This document shows, in pieces, positions 7,226 through 17,693 of a stretch of 17,905 nt of DNA (positions are counted from its first letter, which is position 1; each line of letters begins with the position of its first letter). A program made the position numbers and the translations under genes. The notes below the pieces were generated by a model. That model was not told the origin of the DNA. It saw nothing but the letters and a program-made list of their open reading frames with translations, and searched no databases. Origin of the DNA: Zygnema circumcarinatum SAG 698-1b (Eukaryota > Plantae > Zygnematophyceae); assembly GCA_037447605.1 (NCBI GenBank), contig JBBHKD010000057.1, positions 1-17,905 on the forward strand. Direction: 5' to 3'.

Positions 7226-8336
7226 GGTTGGGCTGCGAAACATGTATCCCATGTCATGTGACAGCCCAATGCATTTGATCGCTAATGCAGAGGTTGTAGA
7301 TGAAGATGGAGATGGTCAGCACGGTCAGCGGGCGGTCTAGGGCACAACATGGGATTTCACAGTCCTCTTCAAACAACTGACGCGTATTCACCTTTGTTTC
7401 CTGGTCTCATTTCTGCTCTTGAGATGTAGACGAGATGAAGCGTGTACTGCACGCAAGGAAATATTCGACTGTGGAATGTTGAGAATGTTCAAAACGTTCA
7501 GTCAGTAAACATGGGCCATCACTTGCTTGGAAAGAACGCTAGCACAAAGACACCATTTATGTCAAAAACAATCCTCCACAAACATGTCCATGTTTGCGCC
7601 GGTCTCACGGACACGCGATTGTACTATTCTTTGTACAAAGGTCAAAAGAACATTCTCATGTGGCCACCGCTCGTTTTACAAAACAATAAATTACGATACG
7701 ATATCCGTACATTAAGAATATCGTACGGATTCCGGACAGCTTCGGTTTTACGAGCGAGATAGAGGTCCGCGGGCTTGAGCGATCGATGCCGCCCGAAAAG
7801 AATATTTTAAGTGTGTGGCGATTGGGGCCGAGTGTTACTTGAGTCCGCAGAACTGTAGCGGATGCATGGGTCACGTAGATGAGTGGCACCATGGAATGGT
7901 GTGTGGTTGCACCCGCGTTGTGGATTCAATGGTTGGCGTGCAAGCCAATGGTTGACGAACAGAGCCAACCACCGCCAATGGTTGCGACATGATTTGGCTC
8001 CAGAATGCTTGTGAAGGTGAGGGCAGATGAGAGAAGGCGGATTATGGGGGGAGCTGTGAAGTGGGACAGGGAAAGGGATTCGAGATGGATCGAGATGCGT
8101 AGCGCTGATTGGGCGGCTATCATCTTCTTTGTTTACCAAAAAAACTAAAAAAAAAGGCTGAAAGGGTACGAGCGGGAGGAGTGGCAGTAGGGGGGGAGAA
8201 CGGGACTCAATTTCAACACACCCTTCTCCCTTCCCTTCACTCTCCTTCCTTCTCTGCCTCCTCCCCCTTCTCCCGCTCCTGCCTCTCCCCTTACCGTTCA
8301 CTCTCCCTCTCCCCTCAAACGCAACTCCGCGTTTTA

Positions 8337-8563
8337 CATTTGCGGCATGGACCCCAGTCCTCTTCGCGCTGGCCTCGGCACAAATCATGCGCGCGTGCAA
8401 ACGCTGCCGGACTCGTACAGTACTTGGACTTGTCCTTCGCCGTCAAACGTCGACACTGTTTAGTTCATTCATGTTTGGTTCAGTTTAGTTTTAACTGAGA
8501 GCACATGGCAACTCAGAAGTCCCAAAAACTTAAATTGCCCTGACGGCGGTTATAACTGTCCTC
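8337..8563. repeat. ~227-bp direct repeat, copy 1 (intact; DNA-transposon-terminus-like, ends ...TAACTGTCCTC)
   Basis: Aligns with 8724-8933 joined to 17032-17048; long shared blocks such as gtgcaaacgctgccggactcgtacagtacttggacttgt. Confidence 0.8.
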
Positions 8564-8723
8564 AACTCCGCCATAGACCTTAAACCCTAACCCTCCTCTG
8601 AACTTTAGTAAAGAAATGTGCAACCCCCTTCTCAAAGGCCCCTCACTCATGGCGCCCGTTCTATGTCCTCAGCATGCCTACGGCTCCACTGAGGCCCACG
8701 GGAAACTGAAACTGTGGCGCGGC

Positions 8724-8933
8724 CATTTGCGGCATGGAGCCTCAGTTCTGTTCTCGCTGGCCTCGGCCCAAATCATGCGCAGGTGCAAACGCTGCCGGAC
8801 TCGTACAGTACTTGGACTTGTACTTCGCCGTCAAACGTCGACGCTGTTCGGTTCATTCATAAACTCAGCTTGCAGTTTCAACTGAGTGCACATGGCAGCT
8901 CGGAAGTCCCGAAGACTTAAATGGCCCTGACGG
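8724..8933. repeat. ~227-bp direct repeat, copy 2, interrupted by the non-LTR element; remainder at 17032-17048
   Basis: Starts catttgcggcatgga like copy 1 (387-bp offset). Breaks after gccctgacgg and resumes after 17031 with cgtttttaactgtcctc (copy 1: cggttataactgtcctc). Confidence 0.85.
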
Positions 8934-9090
8934 AGAGAGCAAACTTTCATTGAACTCGCGATGGCGAGGCCATCAAATGTACATGGATAAAGGCAAAATG
9001 TGGAACCACGAAGGACTGGTCACAAAGGACCGAAACACAATAAAACAAAGCTAGGAGCGGAAAACTACGCCTAGGCACAACAACGCAGCC

Positions 9091-9228
9091 CTAAAAGCAG
9101 CCGCGAAGGTCACCGATGTGAGGCACGTCGCGAGGAGGGAGCGGTGGAAGTCCACCAACACGGTCACCAACAACTGCAGCACGCCGAAGAAGCGTAGAAG
9201 CAAGGCAACGCTGAAGGGCGACGGAAAT
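9091..9228 (-). pseudogene. Non-LTR ORF C-terminus (tail after restriction-like endonuclease)
   Basis: Hand translation ISVALQRCLASTLLRRAAVVGDRVGGLPPLPPRDVPHIGDLRGCF*; (R)ISVALQRxxA is the typical terminal motif of CRE-type RLE proteins; not in the ORF track. Confidence 0.75.
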
Positions 9229-9238
9229 NNNNNNNNNN

Positions 9239-10001
9239 CCCACATGAAAGTTCACTTCCCACCCTTTGAACCTATCTTCTCTTACTCACTACCTCACAAC
9301 ACGAGCAAGGCAGCCTAGCAACACGAGCTGGCACAGAATGAGAGACAGACTAGATTACCTACCAAACACACAACACACGCTATATACTATATGGCGTTGT
9401 GACGTGACACACATGTCACGTCACGGCCGCCATAGCTGGCCCTTGCATTCGGCAAAGCGGCGCACTCAGAATAGCGACCTACGGTAGTGGTCTCGTAAAC
9501 CTACGACGACACCGACCTATTTCCGTCCTATCCGTACAGTGCCGCCGCTCGTCGGGTACCCTTGCCCCATTACCCCGACGCCTGACTCCGTCGCCGTACG
9601 CTCCGAACAAGCGGGCCCACTCGATGGTGGCCGCGTGGCGTACTTGATTGGTTCGCCCATTAAACGGCGTGGCAGGCATTTCATAGGTAAACCCCGGCGT
9701 CACCGTAGCACCGCTCCAGCGTCCTACGCGCCCGGGCCAAATGTCCAATCATCGCCCCAGCATCCGTACCCTGGCGCGCCCATCCGGCGCCACGACCAAT
9801 CAGCTCCGCGCGTCTCCAAGTTACCGCCGCGATCAATCACGGCCGTTCATCCACACTCCGCCCGCGCGCGCTACAAGCGCACCTCAGAACTTAAGTTGCT
9901 GACGTCATCGCGACTCATACTAGGTAGTTTCCATGACTGAGTACCACAACCAAGTTAGTGTGTACTATGTAATGCTTAACTATCATACACTAACACTAAC
10001 A
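9239..10001 (-). repeat. Copia 3' LTR (last ~235 bp lost in gap)
   Basis: Begins TGTTAGTG on minus right after the PPT; one substitution (9548 C vs 14942 T) in the ~325 bp comparable before the right-hand gap. Confidence 0.92.
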
Positions 10002-10012
10002 ATCCCCCTCTT
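10002..10012 (-). other. Polypurine tract
   Basis: AAGAGGGGGAT directly before the TG of the 3' LTR, a few nt after the pol stop. Confidence 0.88.
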
Positions 10013-10017
10013 GGGAC

Positions 10018-13000
10018 TCAGTCTCTCATGGGCCCCAGCCCAATAAGCCTGCTATTCACTAGTATGGTCTCTCCGCTAACACCTTTTGTCAACATATCTG
10101 CAGCCTGCTCTTTTGTTCCAACGAACTTCACAACGATCATCCCTTCCTCCACCAACTCTCGCACATAGTGATACTGCACTCTGATGTGCTTGGTCCTCTT
10201 GTGGAACACTGGATTTTCCACCAAGGCAATGGACGACTGATTATCCGTGAACAGAGCCACGGGCAGTTGCGGCCTCTTACACTCCTCGAAGAAATGTTGA
10301 AACCACACTCCCTCCTTCGCTGCATGGCAAGCCCCCATGTACTCGCCCTCGGTGCTTGACAACGCCACTGAATCTTGAAGCTTGGAGCTCCACGAGATGG
10401 CTCCGCCTCCATTCAGGAATACGAATCCTGAAGTTGATCTTGACGTGTCCACGTCACCACCCCAATCTGAATCGGTGTAACCAATCACACGATTCGGCCC
10501 CCTCTCATATCTGAGGCCGTACTCCAAGGTTCCCCGCACATACCTGAAGATTCTCTTCACGGCTTCCCAATGTTCGGGTCCTGGATTCTCCATGAACCGA
10601 CTTGCTGTGCTCACGGCTTTGGCCAAGTCCGGTCGCGTACCAATCATCAGGTACATGAGACTTCCGATAGCAGATCTGTACGGCACTCCGTACATCCGCT
10701 GTACCTCCGCATCCGTTGCGGGCGACATATCCTTCGAAAGTCGCGCCCCGATCTCCATCGGGCTGGTGCACGGTCTGCAATCCTCCATGTGAAATCTCGC
10801 AAGTACATCCATCGCGTACTTCTTCTGACTCAGGAAGAGGCTGCCGTCCTGCCCCCTCTTCAGCTGAATCCCTAACAGATACTGCGCCTCCCCTAGATCC
10901 GACATCTTGAAGTTAGCTTGCAAGAGCTGCTTTAGATTATTGATTCTCTCCAACGAGAGACTCACCATAATGAGGTCGTCAACGTAGATCCCAACGTACA
11001 TGAGATCCTCCCCCTCTCCTTGTCGGTAGACGGAATGATCCGTCTCAAATCGCGCAAATCCGTTCCTCCTGAGAAGATCGTCTATCTTCTCGTACCATAT
11101 CCTGGGCGCCTGTTTCAGTCCGTACAGGCTCTTCACTAAGCGACAAACGAGATGCTCTTGACCGGGAGTCACCTTTCCTTCGGGCTGCTCCATGTAGATC
11201 TCCTCGGTGAGATCTCCGTACAAAAACGCGGTCTTGATGTCCAACTGATGGACATGCATCCCCTCCGCAGCTGCAATCGAGATCAAGGCTCTAAGGGAGT
11301 TGAATTTCACCACTGGGGCAAAGGTCTCCGTATAGTCAACTCCGTACTTCTGGCTGAAGCCTTTCGCCACCAGCCGCGCCTTGTAGCGGTCGACGCTCCC
11401 GTCAGCTTTCCGCTTCACCTTGAACACCCACTTGCATCCAATGGCTTTCCTTCCTCTCGGCAGCTTCTGCAGTCGCCACGTGCCATTCTCAATCAGACTA
11501 TCCCATTCGCTGTCTATCGCCGCTCTCCACTTATCTCCATCGACCCCATCATGAGCCTCCATAAACGTTTGCGGCTCGGTAATCATGAAGCAATGAGCAA
11601 CACCTGCGAGATCAGCGGAGTCTGAAGGCACTCTCTCTTGCACCAGGTTATTTTGTGAGGGCCTGAAACGATCAGGCTTCCTCACCGCTCGGCTGCTCCT
11701 CCGGACTCCTTGCACTCTCCCACTTCTTGGGTTGAAGAAGATGCCGGGAACAAACCCTGGAGGCATGTTCGATAACATCGCCTCTCTCTCTTCCGCCTCC
11801 AAGTCATCAGACCCTTGTCGATGCAATGGAACGGTCTCGTCCGAGTTCTCCTCGTCTGACAGATGCTTGTGTACCGGAGCCGTCTCCACCGAGCCTTGCG
11901 GTTCTCCCGCATGCGGCGCTTCGGGTTCGTCTCCGACTGTCGCCTCAACGCTTGGTGCTGCCTCTGGCTCAGCTCTTCCGCTCACTGGCGTGCTGATCTC
12001 CTCCAAGGCCGGGACTGGGGAAGCGTCGGCGCCTCCTCCACTAGTCTCCACATCCTCGTACACAATTTCCAAATCTGCCTTCTGGGGTCGGCTCTCACCT
12101 AGTCGTGCCACCGCCCCTCTCTCATCCACCGTGACATCCCTCGAACTCTGAACTTCATTCAATCGAGGGTTCCACACCCTGTAGGTGCGACTGTCAGCGT
12201 TGTAGCCGAGAATGTACCCTTCTACGGCTCTCGGGTCGAACTTCCTCTTCTGCTTCGCTTTCGGAACTGTCGACCAACACCGCGCTCCGAATGCCTTCAG
12301 GTGAGTGACCGTGGGTTTCCTCCCACTCCACACCTCCTCAGGAACGTGATCCTTGAGGACAGAGGATGGACATCTGTTCCTAAGGTAAGCGGCAGTCATC
12401 ACTGCCTCTCCCCAAAAAGATGCCTGAAATGGGGAATCAATCAGCATGGTCCGCGCCATGTCCCCCAACGTCCTGTTAACTCTCTCAGCAGCTCCATTAC
12501 TTTGAGGGGAATAGGGAGCAGAGAATTCATGCCTTATGCCTCGAGACTTGAGGTATTCACCAAACTCCTTGGACTTGAACTCGCCTCCGTTATCTGAACG
12601 AAGAGTCTTCAACTTGTGTCCAGTCTCTCTCTCCATCTGAATCTGCCAATCTCTGAAGGCTCCGAATGCCTCAGACTTGTTCTTGAGAATCTTCACCCAG
12701 ATCTTCCTCGAAAAATCGTCAAGAAAGGTGATGAAGTAGCGGGCTCCTCCTGTCGTTGCCGGTGTCACGGGACCGCAGAGATCGGTATGGACTAACTCCA
12801 ACTTCTCCTTCGCATGGAACGCCTCTTCTCCACTCCTCGCAAACGGTCTCCTATGCGCCTTCCCCTCCACACACTCTTTGCAAAAACCGAGCTCCTTCTC
12901 AACTACGTCAACATCCAACCCACGGACCAGCCCCTTTTCTGACAGTTGCTGCAAGCCCCTATGGTTGAGGTGACCAAGTCTACGATGCCAGAGATTCACT

Positions 13001-14484
13001 ACATCTTCAGCCACGGCCATGACTTCCTCATCTTCTTCTCTCCTATAGTGAAGGTAATACAACCCTCCTTTCTCAAACCCCTTAAACAGCTGCTTCCCCG
13101 TCACAAGGTGAGTAGCTACACATGACTTCTCTCTGAACGTGACCTCATACCCCTTCTTACACACTTGGCTAACAGACATAAAATTCTGTTTCAGCTCAGG
13201 GGTGTGAAGGACGTCACCGATGCAGAGGCGCTCTTGCCTCTTTTCTTCGTAGATCACGGAGCCGTCTCCGAGGATCATCTTGACTTCACCTCCTTTCGTG
13301 ACTGTCACTCCCTCTCCGGTAGCTGAGTGAACGGAACGTGTCCTCTCCAACGTGTCCAACGTGGAAAACATTTGCTTGTCGCCACACATGTGTGTGGAAG
13401 CGCCAGAGTCGATCAGCCATGGCCGCTTCAGATCCTGAACCTGGATCTTCCCAACAAAGTCAGAATGTTCAGTCACCATGAGGTTGGTCTCCACCGCCAC
13501 TCTGCAATCTGCACTCTTGTGGCCACGCTTCTTGCACTTGAAGCAGGTCCCCTTGAACCCCTTCTTATCCTTCTTGATGGATGACGAAGCGCCTCCTCCC
13601 CGATCTGGGGTCCCCTTGTTCTTGTAACAGTCTGCCGAGTAGTGGCCGCTCTTGCCACACGTGTAGCACACTCCCGCAGGACGCTCTCCTCGGTCTGACT
13701 TCACCGCGCCTCCTCTTCGGTCTTGACGTGTGTGCAGCGCGAGCACCTTCTCCTCGGTGCTGCCAACGTCTTGAACTGAGTCCTCCTCCTTGATCCTTCG
13801 CTTCACTTGCTCAAGGGTCATTTTCGAATTTGTTAGGACGGTTCTAAGAGCCGCAACTGCTACATCAAAACGGGCAGGCAGTCCCCCCAGAAACTGGCTA
13901 ATCTTATGATCACTCTCTAATGGTTTCTGAAGGGCTATGAACCTTTCCATCAGAGTATCAAACCTGACCATATATTCGCTAAGTTTCTCATCTGAGGACA
14001 TCTTCATTTTCCCTAGCTGCGTGTAAAGGTTGACAATCGTCACATTATCCTTTACATCATACATCTCTTCTAAGCACCTCCACATCGCATGTGAGGTCTT
14101 GAGATCATACAGCATAGAGGAGGGACTTCCCCTCACACTCATGACGATCTGGGTAAGGGCCTTGTTGTCCTTGGCCTTCCATCTGGTGAGCGCCGTGTCG
14201 AACTCCGACTGCTGCTCCGCCGTGGCTCCCTCCGGTAGCACTGGTGCCTTGATGGTGCCGTCAACGTACCCCAACAGCCCCTTGCCCACGAGCAAGGGGA
14301 CCAGCCGCCACCTCCACCCCTTGTAGTCCGATCCATCGAACGCCGGGATGCTGAACTTCACGTGGTCCTCGTCGCCACCATTGGCTCTGATACCACTTGT
14401 TGAAGTAGGGGACATCTCGCTACTTCCGGCTCCACCTCGCGTGTCGCCCTCCACAGGAACTCGTGTTCCCACCGATGAAGACAT
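10018..14484 (-). CDS. Copia Gag-Pol polyprotein (gag, 2 zinc knuckles, protease, integrase, RT, RNase H)
   Basis: CYTCGKSGHYSADC and CFKCKKRGHKSADC; WLIDSGASTHM; LWHRRLGH...CKEC; HTDLCGP / LRSDNGGEF / NGAAER; YKARLVAKG, QLDIKTAFL, YVDDL; YTDSDW, STEGEY, TDNQS, ADMLTK. IN precedes RT (copia order). First ATG at 14484 (14490 is GTG). Confidence 0.97.
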   Translation of the reverse strand: MSSSVGTRVPVEGDTRGGAGSSEMSPTSTSGIRANGGDEDHVKFSIPAFDGSDYKGWRWRLVPLLVGKGLLGYVDGTIKAPVLPEGATAEQQSEFDTALTRWKAKDNKALTQIVMSVRGSPSSMLYDLKTSHAMWRCLEEMYDVKDNVTIVNLYTQLGKMKMSSDEKLSEYMVRFDTLMERFIALQKPLESDHKISQFLGGLPARFDVAVAALRTVLTNSKMTLEQVKRRIKEEDSVQDVGSTEEKVLALHTRQDRRGGAVKSDRGERPAGVCYTCGKSGHYSADCYKNKGTPDRGGGASSSIKKDKKGFKGTCFKCKKRGHKSADCRVAVETNLMVTEHSDFVGKIQVQDLKRPWLIDSGASTHMCGDKQMFSTLDTLERTRSVHSATGEGVTVTKGGEVKMILGDGSVIYEEKRQERLCIGDVLHTPELKQNFMSVSQVCKKGYEVTFREKSCVATHLVTGKQLFKGFEKGGLYYLHYRREEDEEVMAVAEDVVNLWHRRLGHLNHRGLQQLSEKGLVRGLDVDVVEKELGFCKECVEGKAHRRPFARSGEEAFHAKEKLELVHTDLCGPVTPATTGGARYFITFLDDFSRKIWVKILKNKSEAFGAFRDWQIQMERETGHKLKTLRSDNGGEFKSKEFGEYLKSRGIRHEFSAPYSPQSNGAAERVNRTLGDMARTMLIDSPFQASFWGEAVMTAAYLRNRCPSSVLKDHVPEEVWSGRKPTVTHLKAFGARCWSTVPKAKQKRKFDPRAVEGYILGYNADSRTYRVWNPRLNEVQSSRDVTVDERGAVARLGESRPQKADLEIVYEDVETSGGGADASPVPALEEISTPVSGRAEPEAAPSVEATVGDEPEAPHAGEPQGSVETAPVHKHLSDEENSDETVPLHRQGSDDLEAEEREAMLSNMPPGFVPGIFFNPRSGRVQGVRRSSRAVRKPDRFRPSQNNLVQERVPSDSADLAGVAHCFMITEPQTFMEAHDGVDGDKWRAAIDSEWDSLIENGTWRLQKLPRGRKAIGCKWVFKVKRKADGSVDRYKARLVAKGFSQKYGVDYTETFAPVVKFNSLRALISIAAAEGMHVHQLDIKTAFLYGDLTEEIYMEQPEGKVTPGQEHLVCRLVKSLYGLKQAPRIWYEKIDDLLRRNGFARFETDHSVYRQGEGEDLMYVGIYVDDLIMVSLSLERINNLKQLLQANFKMSDLGEAQYLLGIQLKRGQDGSLFLSQKKYAMDVLARFHMEDCRPCTSPMEIGARLSKDMSPATDAEVQRMYGVPYRSAIGSLMYLMIGTRPDLAKAVSTASRFMENPGPEHWEAVKRIFRYVRGTLEYGLRYERGPNRVIGYTDSDWGGDVDTSRSTSGFVFLNGGGAISWSSKLQDSVALSSTEGEYMGACHAAKEGVWFQHFFEECKRPQLPVALFTDNQSSIALVENPVFHKRTKHIRVQYHYVRELVEEGMIVVKFVGTKEQAADMLTKGVSGETILVNSRLIGLGPMRD
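14383..14395 (-). other. Primer binding site (initiator tRNA-Met)
   Basis: TGGTATCAGAGCC, 2 nt after the LTR-terminal CA. Confidence 0.93.
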
Positions 14485-15126
14485 TTCCACTCTTGCACTC
14501 TCAAAGCTCTATCTCACAATTCACTCATCGCCCATAACTACAGAATGAACACCAGAGACAAGCACAGCGGAAATCAATCGAGAGAAGTGTAGGAGAAAGC
14601 TCACGGCTCTAAAACTCCTTAATAAATGTCTTCCCACATGAAAGTTCACTTCCCACCCTTTGAACCTATCTTCTCTTACTCACTACCTCACAACACGAGC
14701 AAGGCAGCCTAGCAACACGAGCTGGCACAGAATGAGAGACAGACTAGATTACCTACCAAACACACAACACACGCTATATACTATATGGCGTTGTGACGTG
14801 ACACACATGTCACGTCACGGCCGCCATAGCTGGCCCTTGCATTCGGCAAAGCGGCGCACTCAGAATAGCGACCTACGGTAGTGGTCTCGTAAACCTACGA
14901 CGACACCGACCTATTTCCGTCCTATCCGTACAGTGCCGCCGTTCGTCGGGTACCCTTTACATTTTCGGCCGCCGACNNNNNNNNNNCCGCGCGCGCTACA
15001 AGCGCACCTCAGAACTTAAGTTGCTGACGTCATCGCGACTCATACTAGGTAGTTTCCATGACTGAGTACCACAACCAAGTTAGTGTGTACTATGTAATGC
15101 TTAACTATCATACACTAACACTAACA
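14398..15126 (-). repeat. Copia 5' LTR (contains gap; full LTR ~1.0 kb from the two partial copies)
   Basis: Minus strand TGTTAGTG...TTCAACA; matches 9239-10001 at offsets 5394 and 5125 on either side of the gap. Confidence 0.92.
14775..14818 (-). promoter_or_regulatory. Putative LTR promoter: TGACG-containing 11-bp palindrome next to a TATA-like box (also at 9381-9424)
   Basis: GTGACGTGACA-caca-TGTCACGTCAC followed on minus by ATATAGTATATAG. Confidence 0.5.
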
Positions 15127-16233
15127 AGCGCGAGCAACCATGCGATACAAAACCTCCCCTACGGCTATGGGGCGAACTCCCCCTGCAGGCTTGGCAAGGG
15201 CAACCAAACGAGCTGACGTAAGAATATGACTCACGGACGAGGGAACACGACCCTGCGATATGACACAAGCAAGCTGAAAAAGCAAACCAAACCCACTATC
15301 CCCGGTGTCTGGAGAAAACACATCACGAAGCAACTCATAAACCATGCCCGAAGGCCCCCCTGCAGACAAATGAGGGGAGCGAGTAAGCGCCCGAATGAAA
15401 GCGGCACGATCAAGCACAAACGAGTCGACAGGCTCAAAAGTGTCGATGAAGGAAGGGACATCCGCAGGCGCATCCGGATGGAGAGTCCGAAGGCGATCCA
15501 AAGTGTCGTTGTTGGCCGGGGCGGGCGTAAAGGGTCGAAGAGCGCGAGCAGCGCGAGACAACTCCCCGCATCGGCCTAACTGAACTGCCCGACGATGTCG
15601 AGCGGAGGCGTCCGAAAGGGAGGGCGGGCGAGTGGCGGCAGACGCCGACAGGGCACGAATGCGATCAGCGTGCTCGGCCTGCAAAAGCTCCCAATCCCCA
15701 CCCAAAAAACGAAGACATCGCCGACGGGTCTCGCGAACGGCGCTGGCCCCACCACGAGGGGGCAAAATTAAAACCCAAAGGGGGAAAAGAAGAAGGACAT
15801 GCCAAGCAGCAACATCTGATGGATCACACGCAAGACGAGCAAGAGGCAAACGCAAAGCATCACGAACACAAACACGCAAAGCCCGTGGGATACGAGCGTA
15901 AAGACGAGGACGACGGGACCCAACAAAAAACGACCCAAGGACATCTAAAGACCGAGCATACGCCCAAGCAGCCGGACTAGGCCCAACATGCAAAGTAGAC
16001 CCAGGGGTGGCAGTGACGGGTAGAGAAGAAGAGGGAGTAGAAGAAGGGTCGACAATGGGAGGAGGACGAAGAGGACACGCGCGCATATGCCGGGACAAAC
16101 CCGCACCCTGACCAAAACAATTTCCACAATGATCACAAGGAACCCGGGGGAGAGGCCTGGGGCGAGCAGCGGGAGGGGAAGAAGGAAGAGGGGAAGAACG
16201 GACAGGAGGGGGAAGAGCAACAGCAGATGACAA
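15127..16233 (-). pseudogene. Non-LTR ORF N-terminal part: CCHC zinc finger + start of reverse transcriptase, interrupted by copia LTR
   Basis: CDHCGNCFGQGAGLSRHMRAC; GELSRAARAL; LRTLHP; SAGGPSG; ARLVALAKPAGGVRPIAVGEVLYRMVARA, then LTR TGTTAG. Start position uncertain (no ATG upstream of the finger). Confidence 0.85.
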
Positions 16234-16250
16234 GGCAAGGGGTGGGAAGG

Positions 16251-16390
16251 GGAAGGGAAGGGAAGGGAAGGGAAGGGAAGGGAAGGGAAGGGAAGGGAAG
16301 GGAAGGGAAGGGAAGGGAAGGGAAGGGAAGGGAAGGGAAGGGAAGGGAAGGGAAGGGAAGGGAAGGGAAGGGAAGGGAAGGGAAGGGAAG
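16251..16390. repeat. (GGAAG)28 microsatellite, followed by a degenerate purine tract to ~16990, in the 5' region of the non-LTR element
   Basis: 140 nt of perfect ggaag pentamer. Confidence 0.95.
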
Positions 16391-17218
16391 GGAGAAGGGA
16401 AGGGGAGGGAGAGGAAAGGAAAGGAATGGCGAGAGGAATAAGGGTACGGAAAAGAAGGGGAAGGGGAAAGGATAAGGGAAGGGGATGGAAGGGAAGGGGT
16501 AGAGGAAGGGGAGGGAAAGAAAGGGAGAGGAGGCGGGGGGGGGGGAGGAAAGGGAAGGGAAGAGGAGGGAAGAGAAGGGACAGGAAAGAGAAGAGAGAAG
16601 GGAGAAGAAAGGGGGGAATACGGGAAAGGAAGGGGATGGGAAAGGAAAGGAGGAGGGAAAGGAAAGGAGAGGAGGAGAAACGGGGAGGAAAGAGGGAAGG
16701 GAAGGGAAGGGAGAAGGGAAGGGGAGGGGAAATGAGAAGGGGGGGGGGAGAAGGAAAAGGAAGGGGCAGGACAAAGGAAGGGATTGGAAGGGAAGGGATA
16801 GGGAAACAGAGGTGGAGGAATAAGGAAAGGAAGGGAAGGGAAGGGACCAGGGAGGCGACGGGAAGGGAGAAGGGAAAGGAAGGAGAAAAACAGCAGAAAA
16901 GGGTGGAAAGGGCATAAAAGGCGAGAGCAGCTCAAAAAGAAGAAGCACAAGGACGAAGAGACGCAAAGGGGGAGACAAAAGGGAAAACGCAACACAGCAA
17001 GACAAGCTACGGCAGAAAATCGCCCTGACGGCGTTTTTAACTGTCCTCTTGCTGCCTGGCTGGACTTGAACCAAACGACAAAATCAATGTACAAACGGTC
17101 AATGTTTGGTGGGACAGGACGATTTCCGCCGCCTGCGGTACATCCAGTTGGTCGGTGCCAGCAAGTCGTTCACAACACGACGTCAAAAGTTTACGGAATG
17201 AGTTGATCATGCACGCGA

Positions 17219-17693
17219 CTGGAATATATGACGTCACAGAAGGTTTCTTTTCGACTTGCCGCGGACCAATCGTTCGGTCGTCCTGGAGGCGCCGCAAATC
17301 TATCGCGACGGATAACGCATCGGACGGCCGAGAATTGCGCTTGGATCCATCGGACAGTCGAAAACGCGCCACGTCGGATTTCACATTTTTATTTTTTGTG
17401 GGCGGCTGGTTCCTGGGTTTTCCTGATAGTGACGTGGTGCATCCTCATTTCCCAGAAATTTCTCCTATAACCGTATGTGAATTCCACGCCTCTATCACGA
17501 AAACCCAGGAACCTGCCGCAAACAAAAAATAAAAATGGGATATCAGCCGTGGCGCGCTGTCGACTATGCGATGGATCCCACCACAATTCTCGGTTGTCCG
17601 ATGCGACATCGGCCGCGAGAGATTTGCGGCACCTCCAGGAAGACCGTACAATAGGTCCCGGCCGGGAGGGTTTTGTGACGTCATATATTCCAG
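17219..17693. repeat. Long imperfect inverted repeat (fold-back / MITE-like)
   Basis: Arms 17219-17437 and 17484-17693, ~46-nt loop; outer 20 bp are perfect (ctggaatatatgacgtcaca). Confidence 0.88.

Follow-up and report, generated by a model that had tools for sequence, protein, structure and literature searches.

A putative RLE-type LINE of Zygnema circumcarinatum, abundant and dispersed, lies in a low-copy repeat and is split by a young Ty1/copia element

The LINEs of streptophytes are usually described as L1 or RTE, and the HERO clade has been described mainly from animals. Most of the RLE clades of non-LTR retrotransposons are site-specific, and HERO is the single RLE clade with many non-specific families (PMC4640811). 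The CRE/SLACS/CZAR elements and R2 insert strictly into spliced-leader or 28S rRNA genes, and for the bryophytes and charophytes we found nothing specific on RLE LINEs in the literature. Here we analyze a stretch of 17,905 nucleotides from Zygnema circumcarinatum SAG 698-1b (contig JBBHKD010000057.1 of assembly GCA_037447605.1), referred to as the window, in which a preliminary description had proposed a CRE-like element near the end of a repeat and had suggested that its family might specifically target that repeat terminus. Depth and junctions were taken from Logan contigs of four public runs (X1, X5, X6, and X11).

The insertion itself is clearly delimited, in that AAAT[G/C]GCCCTGACGG flanks an insert of 8.1 kb. 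The left copy of the duplication, AAATGGCCCTGACGG, is at 8919-8933, the right copy, AAATCGCCCTGACGG, is at 17017-17031, and 8532-8546 holds the corresponding empty site, AAATTGCCCTGACGG. A length of 15 bp with a single mismatch (14 of 15 identical) is the best reading of the duplication, which together with the restored empty site is of the kind left by target-primed reverse transcription. The pattern AAATNGCCCTGACGG matches three times in the window where 0.01 matches are expected, and three or more were seen in 0 of 200 shuffles. Removal of the insert leaves a repeat whose register agrees with that of the empty copy at 8331-8562, as the joined segments 8707-8933 and 17032-17065 align with 8320-8580 without a break across the junction, and in both repeat copies the similarity stops at ...AACTGTCCTC. 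Since the alignment is continuous and the end of similarity is common to both copies, an occupied and an empty site adjoin. Thus the preliminary description was right about the target-site duplication, about the repeat that excision restores, and about an occupied and an empty target lying next to each other some 17 bp from the repeat end, and it placed the two LINE pieces (8934-9228 and 15127-17021) correctly to within one base. The insert is a composite, consisting of a minus-strand LINE in two pieces that are split by a Ty1/copia element (9239-15127), and no further LINE pieces were found in the window. The right duplication copy and the final 17 nt of the target repeat together occupy 17017-17048 on the plus strand, as defined by the alignment and the pattern count.

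The target repeat of about 232 bp is, in turn, an insert flanked by a 9-bp duplication. Its empty copy (copy 1, 8331-8562, plus strand) is bounded by the 9-bp direct repeat CAACTCCGC at 8322-8330 and 8563-8571, and contigs of three runs skip it (joints from 8321 to 8563 and from 8327 to 8568). The occupied copy (copy 2) is represented on the left by 8724-8933 (plus strand), which is 86% identical to copy 1 and whose last 15 nt are the left duplication. Terminal inverted repeats were sought in the repeat and none were found, only a weak internal palindrome. A known RNA gene as the target was rejected, as Rfam detected no snRNA, SL RNA, 5S, rRNA, or tRNA in the whole window or, with a more permissive search, in 8300-8940, and ARAGORN detected no tRNA. 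The only Rfam matches were weak ones to miRNA models on hairpins and one to a snoRNA with an E value of 2.8.

The 5′ piece of the LINE begins with a CT-rich leader (16171-17016, minus strand) that includes a (TTCCC)n microsatellite at 16240-16400 (GGGAA on the plus strand). It is followed by the N-terminal 348 codons of the ORF (15128-16170, minus strand), which are open throughout, with no in-frame ATG upstream of the zinc finger. They specify a CCHC finger of the form C-x2-C-x12-H-x3-C (16137 to 16075), which is conserved in the relative from the liverwort Riccia fluitans, then a conserved N-terminal domain and RT motifs 0 and 1, including GGVRPIAVGE, that end ...KPAGGVRPIAVGEVLYRMVARA where the copia insertion cuts the ORF. 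The RT of this copy is therefore represented by motifs 0 and 1 only, up to GGVRPIAVGEVLYRMVARA, while the relatives have RVT_1. The 3′ piece contains the last 45 codons (ISVALQRCLASTLLRR...) and the stop codon (9091-9228, minus strand), identified by alignment with the C-termini of the relatives and matching the Riccia C-terminus YRQRVSVTLQRA, and a 3′ UTR of 157 nt without poly(A) (8934-9090, minus strand), identified from the sequence and a step in contig depth. In the sense direction this UTR closes with ...GTTCAATG and then a 14-nt tail that is specific to this copy, AAAGTTTGCTCTCT (8947 to 8934), and the loose ends of contigs cluster at 8941 and 8948. The consensus of the loose ends behind 9228, translated in frame by hand, reads AILATFYRQR.

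These features support the assignment of the bounded segment to the non-LTR retrotransposons, probably of the early-branching RLE type (the R2/CRE/NeSL/R4/HERO group), in agreement with the preliminary description. Pfam found no apurinic-like endonuclease (Exo_endo_phos), and an N-terminal zinc finger is present instead. The relatives, which are 25-37% identical (63% for Riccia fluitans, the nearest together with Closterium), carry RVT_1 and no APE, and their RT is followed by a CCHC motif and a PD-(D/E)xK-like nuclease. Five of the six aligned C-termini have CxxC...H...C, RH, E, (R)PD, D, and K, and the other (P0008) ends after CCHC and RH. The N-terminal alignment has 25 invariant columns, VRPIAVG among them, and in a search of PDB the sole matches were weak ones to R2 proteins (E 2.7e-5 over the RT). 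With tblastn the matches of all 12 relatives end where the copia junction lies or slightly beyond it (15094-15130), and none of the 12 had an RT or nuclease match elsewhere in the window. Downstream of the nuclease region only the last 45 codons of this copy can be aligned with the relatives, and its nuclease lies outside the assembled letters.

The nested element has the Ty1/copia domain order of gag-protease-integrase-RT with RVT_2. Its minus-strand gag-pol ORF (10018-14490) is open over 1490 codons with the first ATG at 14484, and in the 1490-residue product Pfam places Retrotran_gag_2 at 66-240, zf-CCHC at 274-288, rve at 563-662, and RVT_2 at 1002-1246. It resembles other Ty1/copia elements in having gag, zinc knuckle, and integrase before RVT_2 and long terminal repeats that start with TG, and differs from them in that the interiors of its two LTRs differ and the outer end of the 3′ LTR is lost in a gap. 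The 5′ LTR (14633-15127, minus strand) starts TGTTAG at about 15126 and contains the gap at 14977-14986, and the 3′ LTR was traced over 9239-10002 (minus strand) by direct repeats and LTR alignment. Two pairs of direct repeats, 9239-9538/14633-14932 and 9862-10002/14987-15127, show 100% identity, and in the LTR alignment 325 nt with one mismatch and 141 nt with none lie on either side of that gap. The nested element is young. A word search with its gag region gave no match at E <= 1e-30, and its polyprotein had no exact entry in the records consulted. Segment 9564-9786 of its 3′ LTR is unlike the usual LTR of the copia family, as contigs join 9563 to 9787 with 195 different letters in between and depth is zero over 9608-9735. 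The 5-bp target duplication of the copia element is unreadable because the gap at 9229-9238 abuts the 3′ LTR.

Both N gaps touch copia LTRs. At 14977-14986 the 19 nt preceding the gap cease to match the 3′ LTR, so the letters there are discontinuous. The other gap (9229-9238) lies between the last 45 LINE codons (9228 to 9094) and the copia 3′ LTR at its outer side (9239). The letters are discontinuous there as well, and the gap probably hides about 2 kb of the LINE, a size estimated from the Riccia relative, with the RT after motif 1, the CCHC and nuclease domain, and also the junction of LINE and copia. This copy would then have its RT and nuclease unassembled rather than deleted, and any ORF read across this gap is an artefact. 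Users of the scaffold should be cautious, as its two gaps probably conceal the catalytic domains of the LINE.

The proposal that the family is specific for the repeat terminus is not supported by the contigs. Summed contig depth, which is not a copy number and is taken from contigs that drop rare variants, is 226-704 over 8200-8903 in X1 and 66,323-134,103 over 8904-9095, and the exact contigs at single copy have depths of 109 (X1), 48 (X5), and 146 (X6). In all four runs the 3′ end of the LINE exceeds its flank 100- to 1000-fold in summed depth, with the step from 8948 onwards, while the target repeat is at about one to seven times single copy. The contigs that leave the window at 8948 number 77 (X1), 74 (X5), 82 (X6), and 32 (X11), and their flanks have a consensus agreement of 0.47-0.51, with about 10 nt beside the break in common. 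Paralogous contigs of the repeat (records 3, 4, 19, 20, 25, and 26) align up to 8933 and end within a few letters without the LINE, and among the pieces listed the only contig joining repeat and LINE is the exact one of the window. A site-specific RLE element has most of its copies in one defined target, and here the flanks show no consensus. The flanks of the other copies, 32-82 contigs per run, are therefore unrelated, an outcome that the preliminary description had itself named as speaking against its proposal, and nothing points to a special landing site. Variable lengths of the 3′ tail would blur a short shared target in a position-wise consensus of loose ends, so a preference for a short motif could escape detection in this way.

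We therefore favor, with a probability of about 0.8, a high-copy dispersed RLE LINE that inserted by target-primed reverse transcription into a low-copy repeat of about 232 bp, was later split by the copia element, and is not specific for the repeat. The plus strand would have been nicked after ...GCCCTGACGG and a second cut 15 bp away would have given rise to the 15-bp duplication. The Ty1/copia element would have integrated later, within RT motif 1 of the LINE, and the short-read assembly would have broken at the repeats, so that the LINE RT and nuclease and part of one LTR fall in the two N gaps. The landing site would owe nothing to specificity for the repeat, the family landing in many unrelated sequences. 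A looser preference, whether for a short motif, for imperfect palindromes, or for the termini of small mobile elements such as MITE-like or retroposon-like repeats, seems unlikely. The insertion site does fall within an arm of a weak palindrome of 24 bp (TGACGGCGGTTATAA / TTATAACTGTCCTCA, 80% complementary) and the target repeat is likewise an insert with its own 9-bp duplication, but such a palindrome is at chance level and the loose-end flanks of 32-82 contigs per run lack a consensus.

That the scaffold misjoins the 3′ and 5′ pieces of two LINE copies via the copia contig is highly improbable, even though each join is an N gap at the border of a repeat, one position of the 15-bp duplication is mismatched, and a 223-bp segment of the 3′ LTR is uncovered by any contig of the four runs. 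The outer flanks rebuild a single repeat unit in register, with 29 of 32 nt on the right side, and a misjoin would require that two repeat copies had each received an insertion independently, both at the same base. We give the least credence to sequence specificity for the repeat terminus, either of the LINE family or of a sub-lineage with the 14-nt tail AAAGTTTGCTCTCT. The neighboring occupied and empty sites and the site specificity of most RLE clades (PMC4640811) would fit it, but the repeat is at only about one to seven times single-copy depth compared to 100 to 1000 times for the LINE 3′ end, and the other listed repeat contigs end at 8933 without the LINE. Moreover, the window's own contig (8792-8963) ends exactly 30 nt into the LINE which, with words of 31 letters, suggests that this 30-mer is also present elsewhere, next to another flank.

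A new target specificity of an RLE LINE would have had a bearing on how site-specific retrotransposons evolve and on tools for gene insertion, and that interest falls away with a dispersed family. What remains of value is a clearly bounded example of a high-copy family of RLE-type LINEs in a genome of the green lineage, one that lacks a poly(A) tail. As a speculation, it might represent an abundant streptophyte lineage of non-site-specific RLE LINEs with short pyrimidine-rich rather than poly(A) tails, perhaps preferring imperfect palindromes or the termini of small mobile elements; such a preference, if true, would amount to structural rather than sequence-specific choice of target.

The Riccia fluitans LINE (L001, about 8960-12340; GCA_043381455.1, CM092408.1) is 63% identical over the 73 residues before the copia break and shares the C-x2-C-x12-H-x3-C finger, the CT-rich leader, the C-terminal YRQRVSVTLQRA, and a pyrimidine-rich 3′ UTR. 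However, the Riccia copy is degenerate and its ORF is broken into at least four pieces, its 3′ UTR has no DNA similarity to that of the Zygnema copy, and it adjoins an adenine glycosylase gene rather than the target repeat. The search for a duplication flanking it gave one 9-mer match only, which is at chance level.

With the CRE/SLACS/CZAR elements and R2, the latter providing the only solved structures with detectable similarity to this family, the LINE shares an N-terminal zinc finger, a single ORF with a C-terminal nuclease (here as seen in the relatives), the lack of poly(A), and an ORF that is open to the 5′ end without an ATG before the finger. It differs from CRE and R2 in that no Myb domain was detected and, in contrast to their strict specificity for RNA genes, its copies have unrelated flanks and no RNA gene was found in the target repeat. 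The HERO clade is similar in having RT followed by CCHC and a PD-(D/E)xK-like nuclease without APE, as seen in the relatives of this LINE, and in its dispersed and mostly non-site-specific insertion, whereas HERO is known mainly from animals and the closest relatives of the Zygnema LINE are in the liverwort Riccia fluitans and in Closterium.

The 8.1-kb insert is neatly delimited. The 15-mers at its left and right ends, AAATGGCCCTGACGG (8919-8933) and AAATCGCCCTGACGG (17017-17031), are identical at 14/15 positions and constitute a 15-bp target duplication, and the unoccupied target, AAATTGCCCTGACGG, lies at 8532-8546 in an adjacent empty copy of the same repeat. The pattern AAATNGCCCTGACGG has three matches in the window versus 0.01 expected, a number reached in 0/200 shuffles. 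When 8707-8933 and 17032-17065 are joined and aligned to 8320-8580, the alignment is unbroken through the junction, and repeat similarity stops at ...AACTGTCCTC in the occupied and empty copies alike. From this junction-spanning alignment and the 15-mers, it follows that the segment was inserted in one repeat copy, ~17 bp before the repeat end. The preliminary description of a duplication-bounded insert beside an empty target is thus upheld, with the 15-mers where it placed them and excision restoring the repeat alignment, and the insert is an ordinary nested transposon insertion.

To the region 8200-10100 we placed Logan contigs (contigs, not reads) of four public sequencing runs from four studies (X1, X5, X6, and X11) at 85% likeness. 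The empty repeat copy (8331-8562) lies between 9-bp direct repeats, CAACTCCGC (within 8322-8571), and contigs in three runs omit exactly this copy (joints 8321->8563 and 8327->8568); therefore, the ~232-bp repeat is in its turn an inserted sequence bearing a 9-bp duplication. It contains no RNA gene by Rfam, terminal inverted repeats are absent, and in appearance it is closer to a small retroposon than to a DNA transposon. The insertion site within it falls on one arm of a weakly palindromic stretch, perhaps by chance. Elsewhere in the window, an imperfect palindrome of ~475 bp at 17219-17693 (arms 76.6% complementary) looks like a MITE-type hairpin, and one segment of it, 17333-17588, hits the MIR821 precursor model of plants (E 3.8e-12) at 74.8 bits, far under the gathering score of 249. 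The hairpin-like segment 8153-8299, purine-rich then pyrimidine-rich, has weak sub-threshold matches, on each strand, to models of MIR528 and MIR408. Its summed depth is 2-7 times single copy, and it is probably a low-complexity repeat.

The insert is a composite with all components on the minus strand, in which a Ty1/copia element (ORF and LTRs, 9239-15127) separates two pieces of a LINE. The 5' piece (17016->15128) consists of a CT-rich leader with a (TTCCC)n microsatellite, followed by one C-x2-C-x12-H-x3-C zinc finger and a 348-codon open stretch ending ...KPAGGVRPIAVGEVLYRMVARA. The first ~850 nt (16171-17016), including the (TTCCC)n array, are nearly all pyrimidine in sense, and the reading frame is open from beyond the element, the first in-frame ATG lying within the zinc finger (16086). 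The 3' piece (9228->8934) codes for ISVALQRCLASTLLRR..., with a stop at 9091-9093 and a 157-nt 3' UTR without poly(A); this C-terminal tail aligns to the C-termini of relatives and matches YRQRVSVTLQRA in an element of Riccia fluitans. In tblastn of twelve relatives against the window, every match stops at 15094-15130, at or slightly beyond the copia junction, and their RT or nuclease has no further match anywhere in the window.

The copia gag-pol is a 1490-codon ORF (10018-14490) with the Pfam domains Retrotran_gag_2, zf-CCHC, gag_pre-integrs, rve, and RVT_2 (E 7e-78). Direct repeats at 9239-9538/14633-14932 and 9862-10002/14987-15127 are 100% identical, and the LTRs align over 325 nt with one mismatch plus 141 identical nt; the element is young, since its LTRs are nearly identical. 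They part ways at 9564 (3' LTR) and 14958 (5' LTR), leaving differing interiors (9564-9786 and 14958-14976) that could be due to recombination or gene conversion among family members, or to an assembly chimera. In place of the 223-bp segment of the 3' LTR, a contig of the family carries 195 letters of different sequence, and 9608-9735 is covered by no contig from the four runs. One assembly gap (14977-14986) is within the 5' LTR and is crossed by no ORF of interest. The other (9229-9238) has the C-terminal LINE codons on one side and the outermost 3' LTR base on the other. Six X11 contigs run on past 9228 (consensus agreement 0.85), and by hand translation in the LINE strand and frame they encode AILATFYRQR immediately preceding ISVALQRC, which is the Riccia motif; therefore the LINE ORF is broken by this gap. 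With the Riccia relative as the yardstick, ~2 kb are missing there, namely the nuclease and the part of the RT that follows motif 1. ORFs listed as spanning 9229-9238 were rejected as artefacts. Despite the gaps, the restored target repeat argues that the two LINE pieces derive from a single insertion.

Relatives of the 348-codon stretch include Closterium proteins, a R. fluitans protein, and unnamed metagenomic proteins, with identities of 25-37% (63% for Riccia), and 25 columns of the N-terminal alignment are invariant. In the relatives scanned, RVT_1 starts exactly at the motif that ends the LINE stretch, with no apurinic-like endonuclease ahead of it. Their C-termini hold CxxC...H...C, RH, E, (R)PD, D, and K, a set established as the CCHC plus PD-(D/E)xK nuclease (restriction-like endonuclease, RLE) that early-branching LINEs encode. 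PDB matches are weak (E 2.7e-5) and to R2 proteins only. The assignment as an RLE-type LINE is borne out at that level by the relatives' RVT_1, their C-terminal nuclease motifs, and the lack of an apurinic-like endonuclease.

The preliminary description had also proposed specificity for the terminus of this repeat. Exact single-copy contigs at the locus have depths of 109 (X1), 48 (X5), and 146 (X6), and the flank, with the two target-repeat copies included, stands at 1-7 times these values. Within the LINE, starting at 8948, the summed depth, which is not a copy number, reaches 66,000-134,000 in X1 (with comparable ratios to baseline in X5 and X6) and falls to ~20,000 at 9160-9223, as expected of a family rich in 5'-truncated copies. 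Contig counts are direct: 77 (X1), 74 (X5), 82 (X6), and 32 (X11) contigs depart from the window just before 8948. Consensus agreement among their flanks is only 0.47-0.51, in a position-wise comparison in which a short motif common to the copies would be blurred if their tails vary in length. The flanks have in common ~10 nt adjoining the break (..AAGGAAGTGG on the + strand, pyrimidine-rich when read in sense) and differ beyond that. A second group of contigs departs at 8941, so that the last 14 nt (8934-8947) are a copy-specific tail. Contigs of other repeat copies (records 3, 4, 19, 20, 25, and 26, among the pieces listed) reach 8933 and end within a few letters, without the LINE, and the sole repeat-LINE join among the listed contigs is the window's own (8792-8963, zero differences). 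Specificity for this repeat is hence not supported: other LINE copies have unrelated flanks (32-82 contigs per run), the very outcome that the preliminary description had named as contrary to its proposal. Judged from the 3' junction, the LINE family is dispersed, without specificity for the target repeat. Its 3' UTR (8941-9095) has many length variants among copies, with joints that skip 42-80 nt or go back 44-90 nt and breakpoints at 8941 as well as 8948. The depth peak at 8968-9095 drops ~six-fold by 9160-9223, which could stem from an abundance of very short elements, or from a non-autonomous derivative with a common 3' end.

Non-LTR elements insert by target-primed reverse transcription, an established mechanism (PMC5753468). 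Here the + strand would have been nicked after ...GCCCTGACGG, its 3' end presumably priming cDNA synthesis on the LINE RNA, and a cut in the opposite strand 15 bp off would have produced the target duplication. The copia element would have integrated into LINE RT motif 1 later.

The Riccia element (CM092408.1, 8960-12340) is a degenerate relative whose ORF is split into four or more pieces, and it sits 1 kb downstream of a gene for an adenine glycosylase. Preserved in this copy are the same zinc finger, the RT, the CCHC plus nuclease, and the C-terminal motif; a pyrimidine-rich 3' UTR comes after the C-terminal motif, and the leader is CT-rich, as in Zygnema. Among RLE LINE clades, CRE, R2, R4, and NeSL are mostly site-specific whereas HERO is mostly not (PMC4640811). 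The architecture of the Zygnema LINE fits this group as a whole, the clade label 'CRE-like' being putative, and in its behaviour the family is like HERO.
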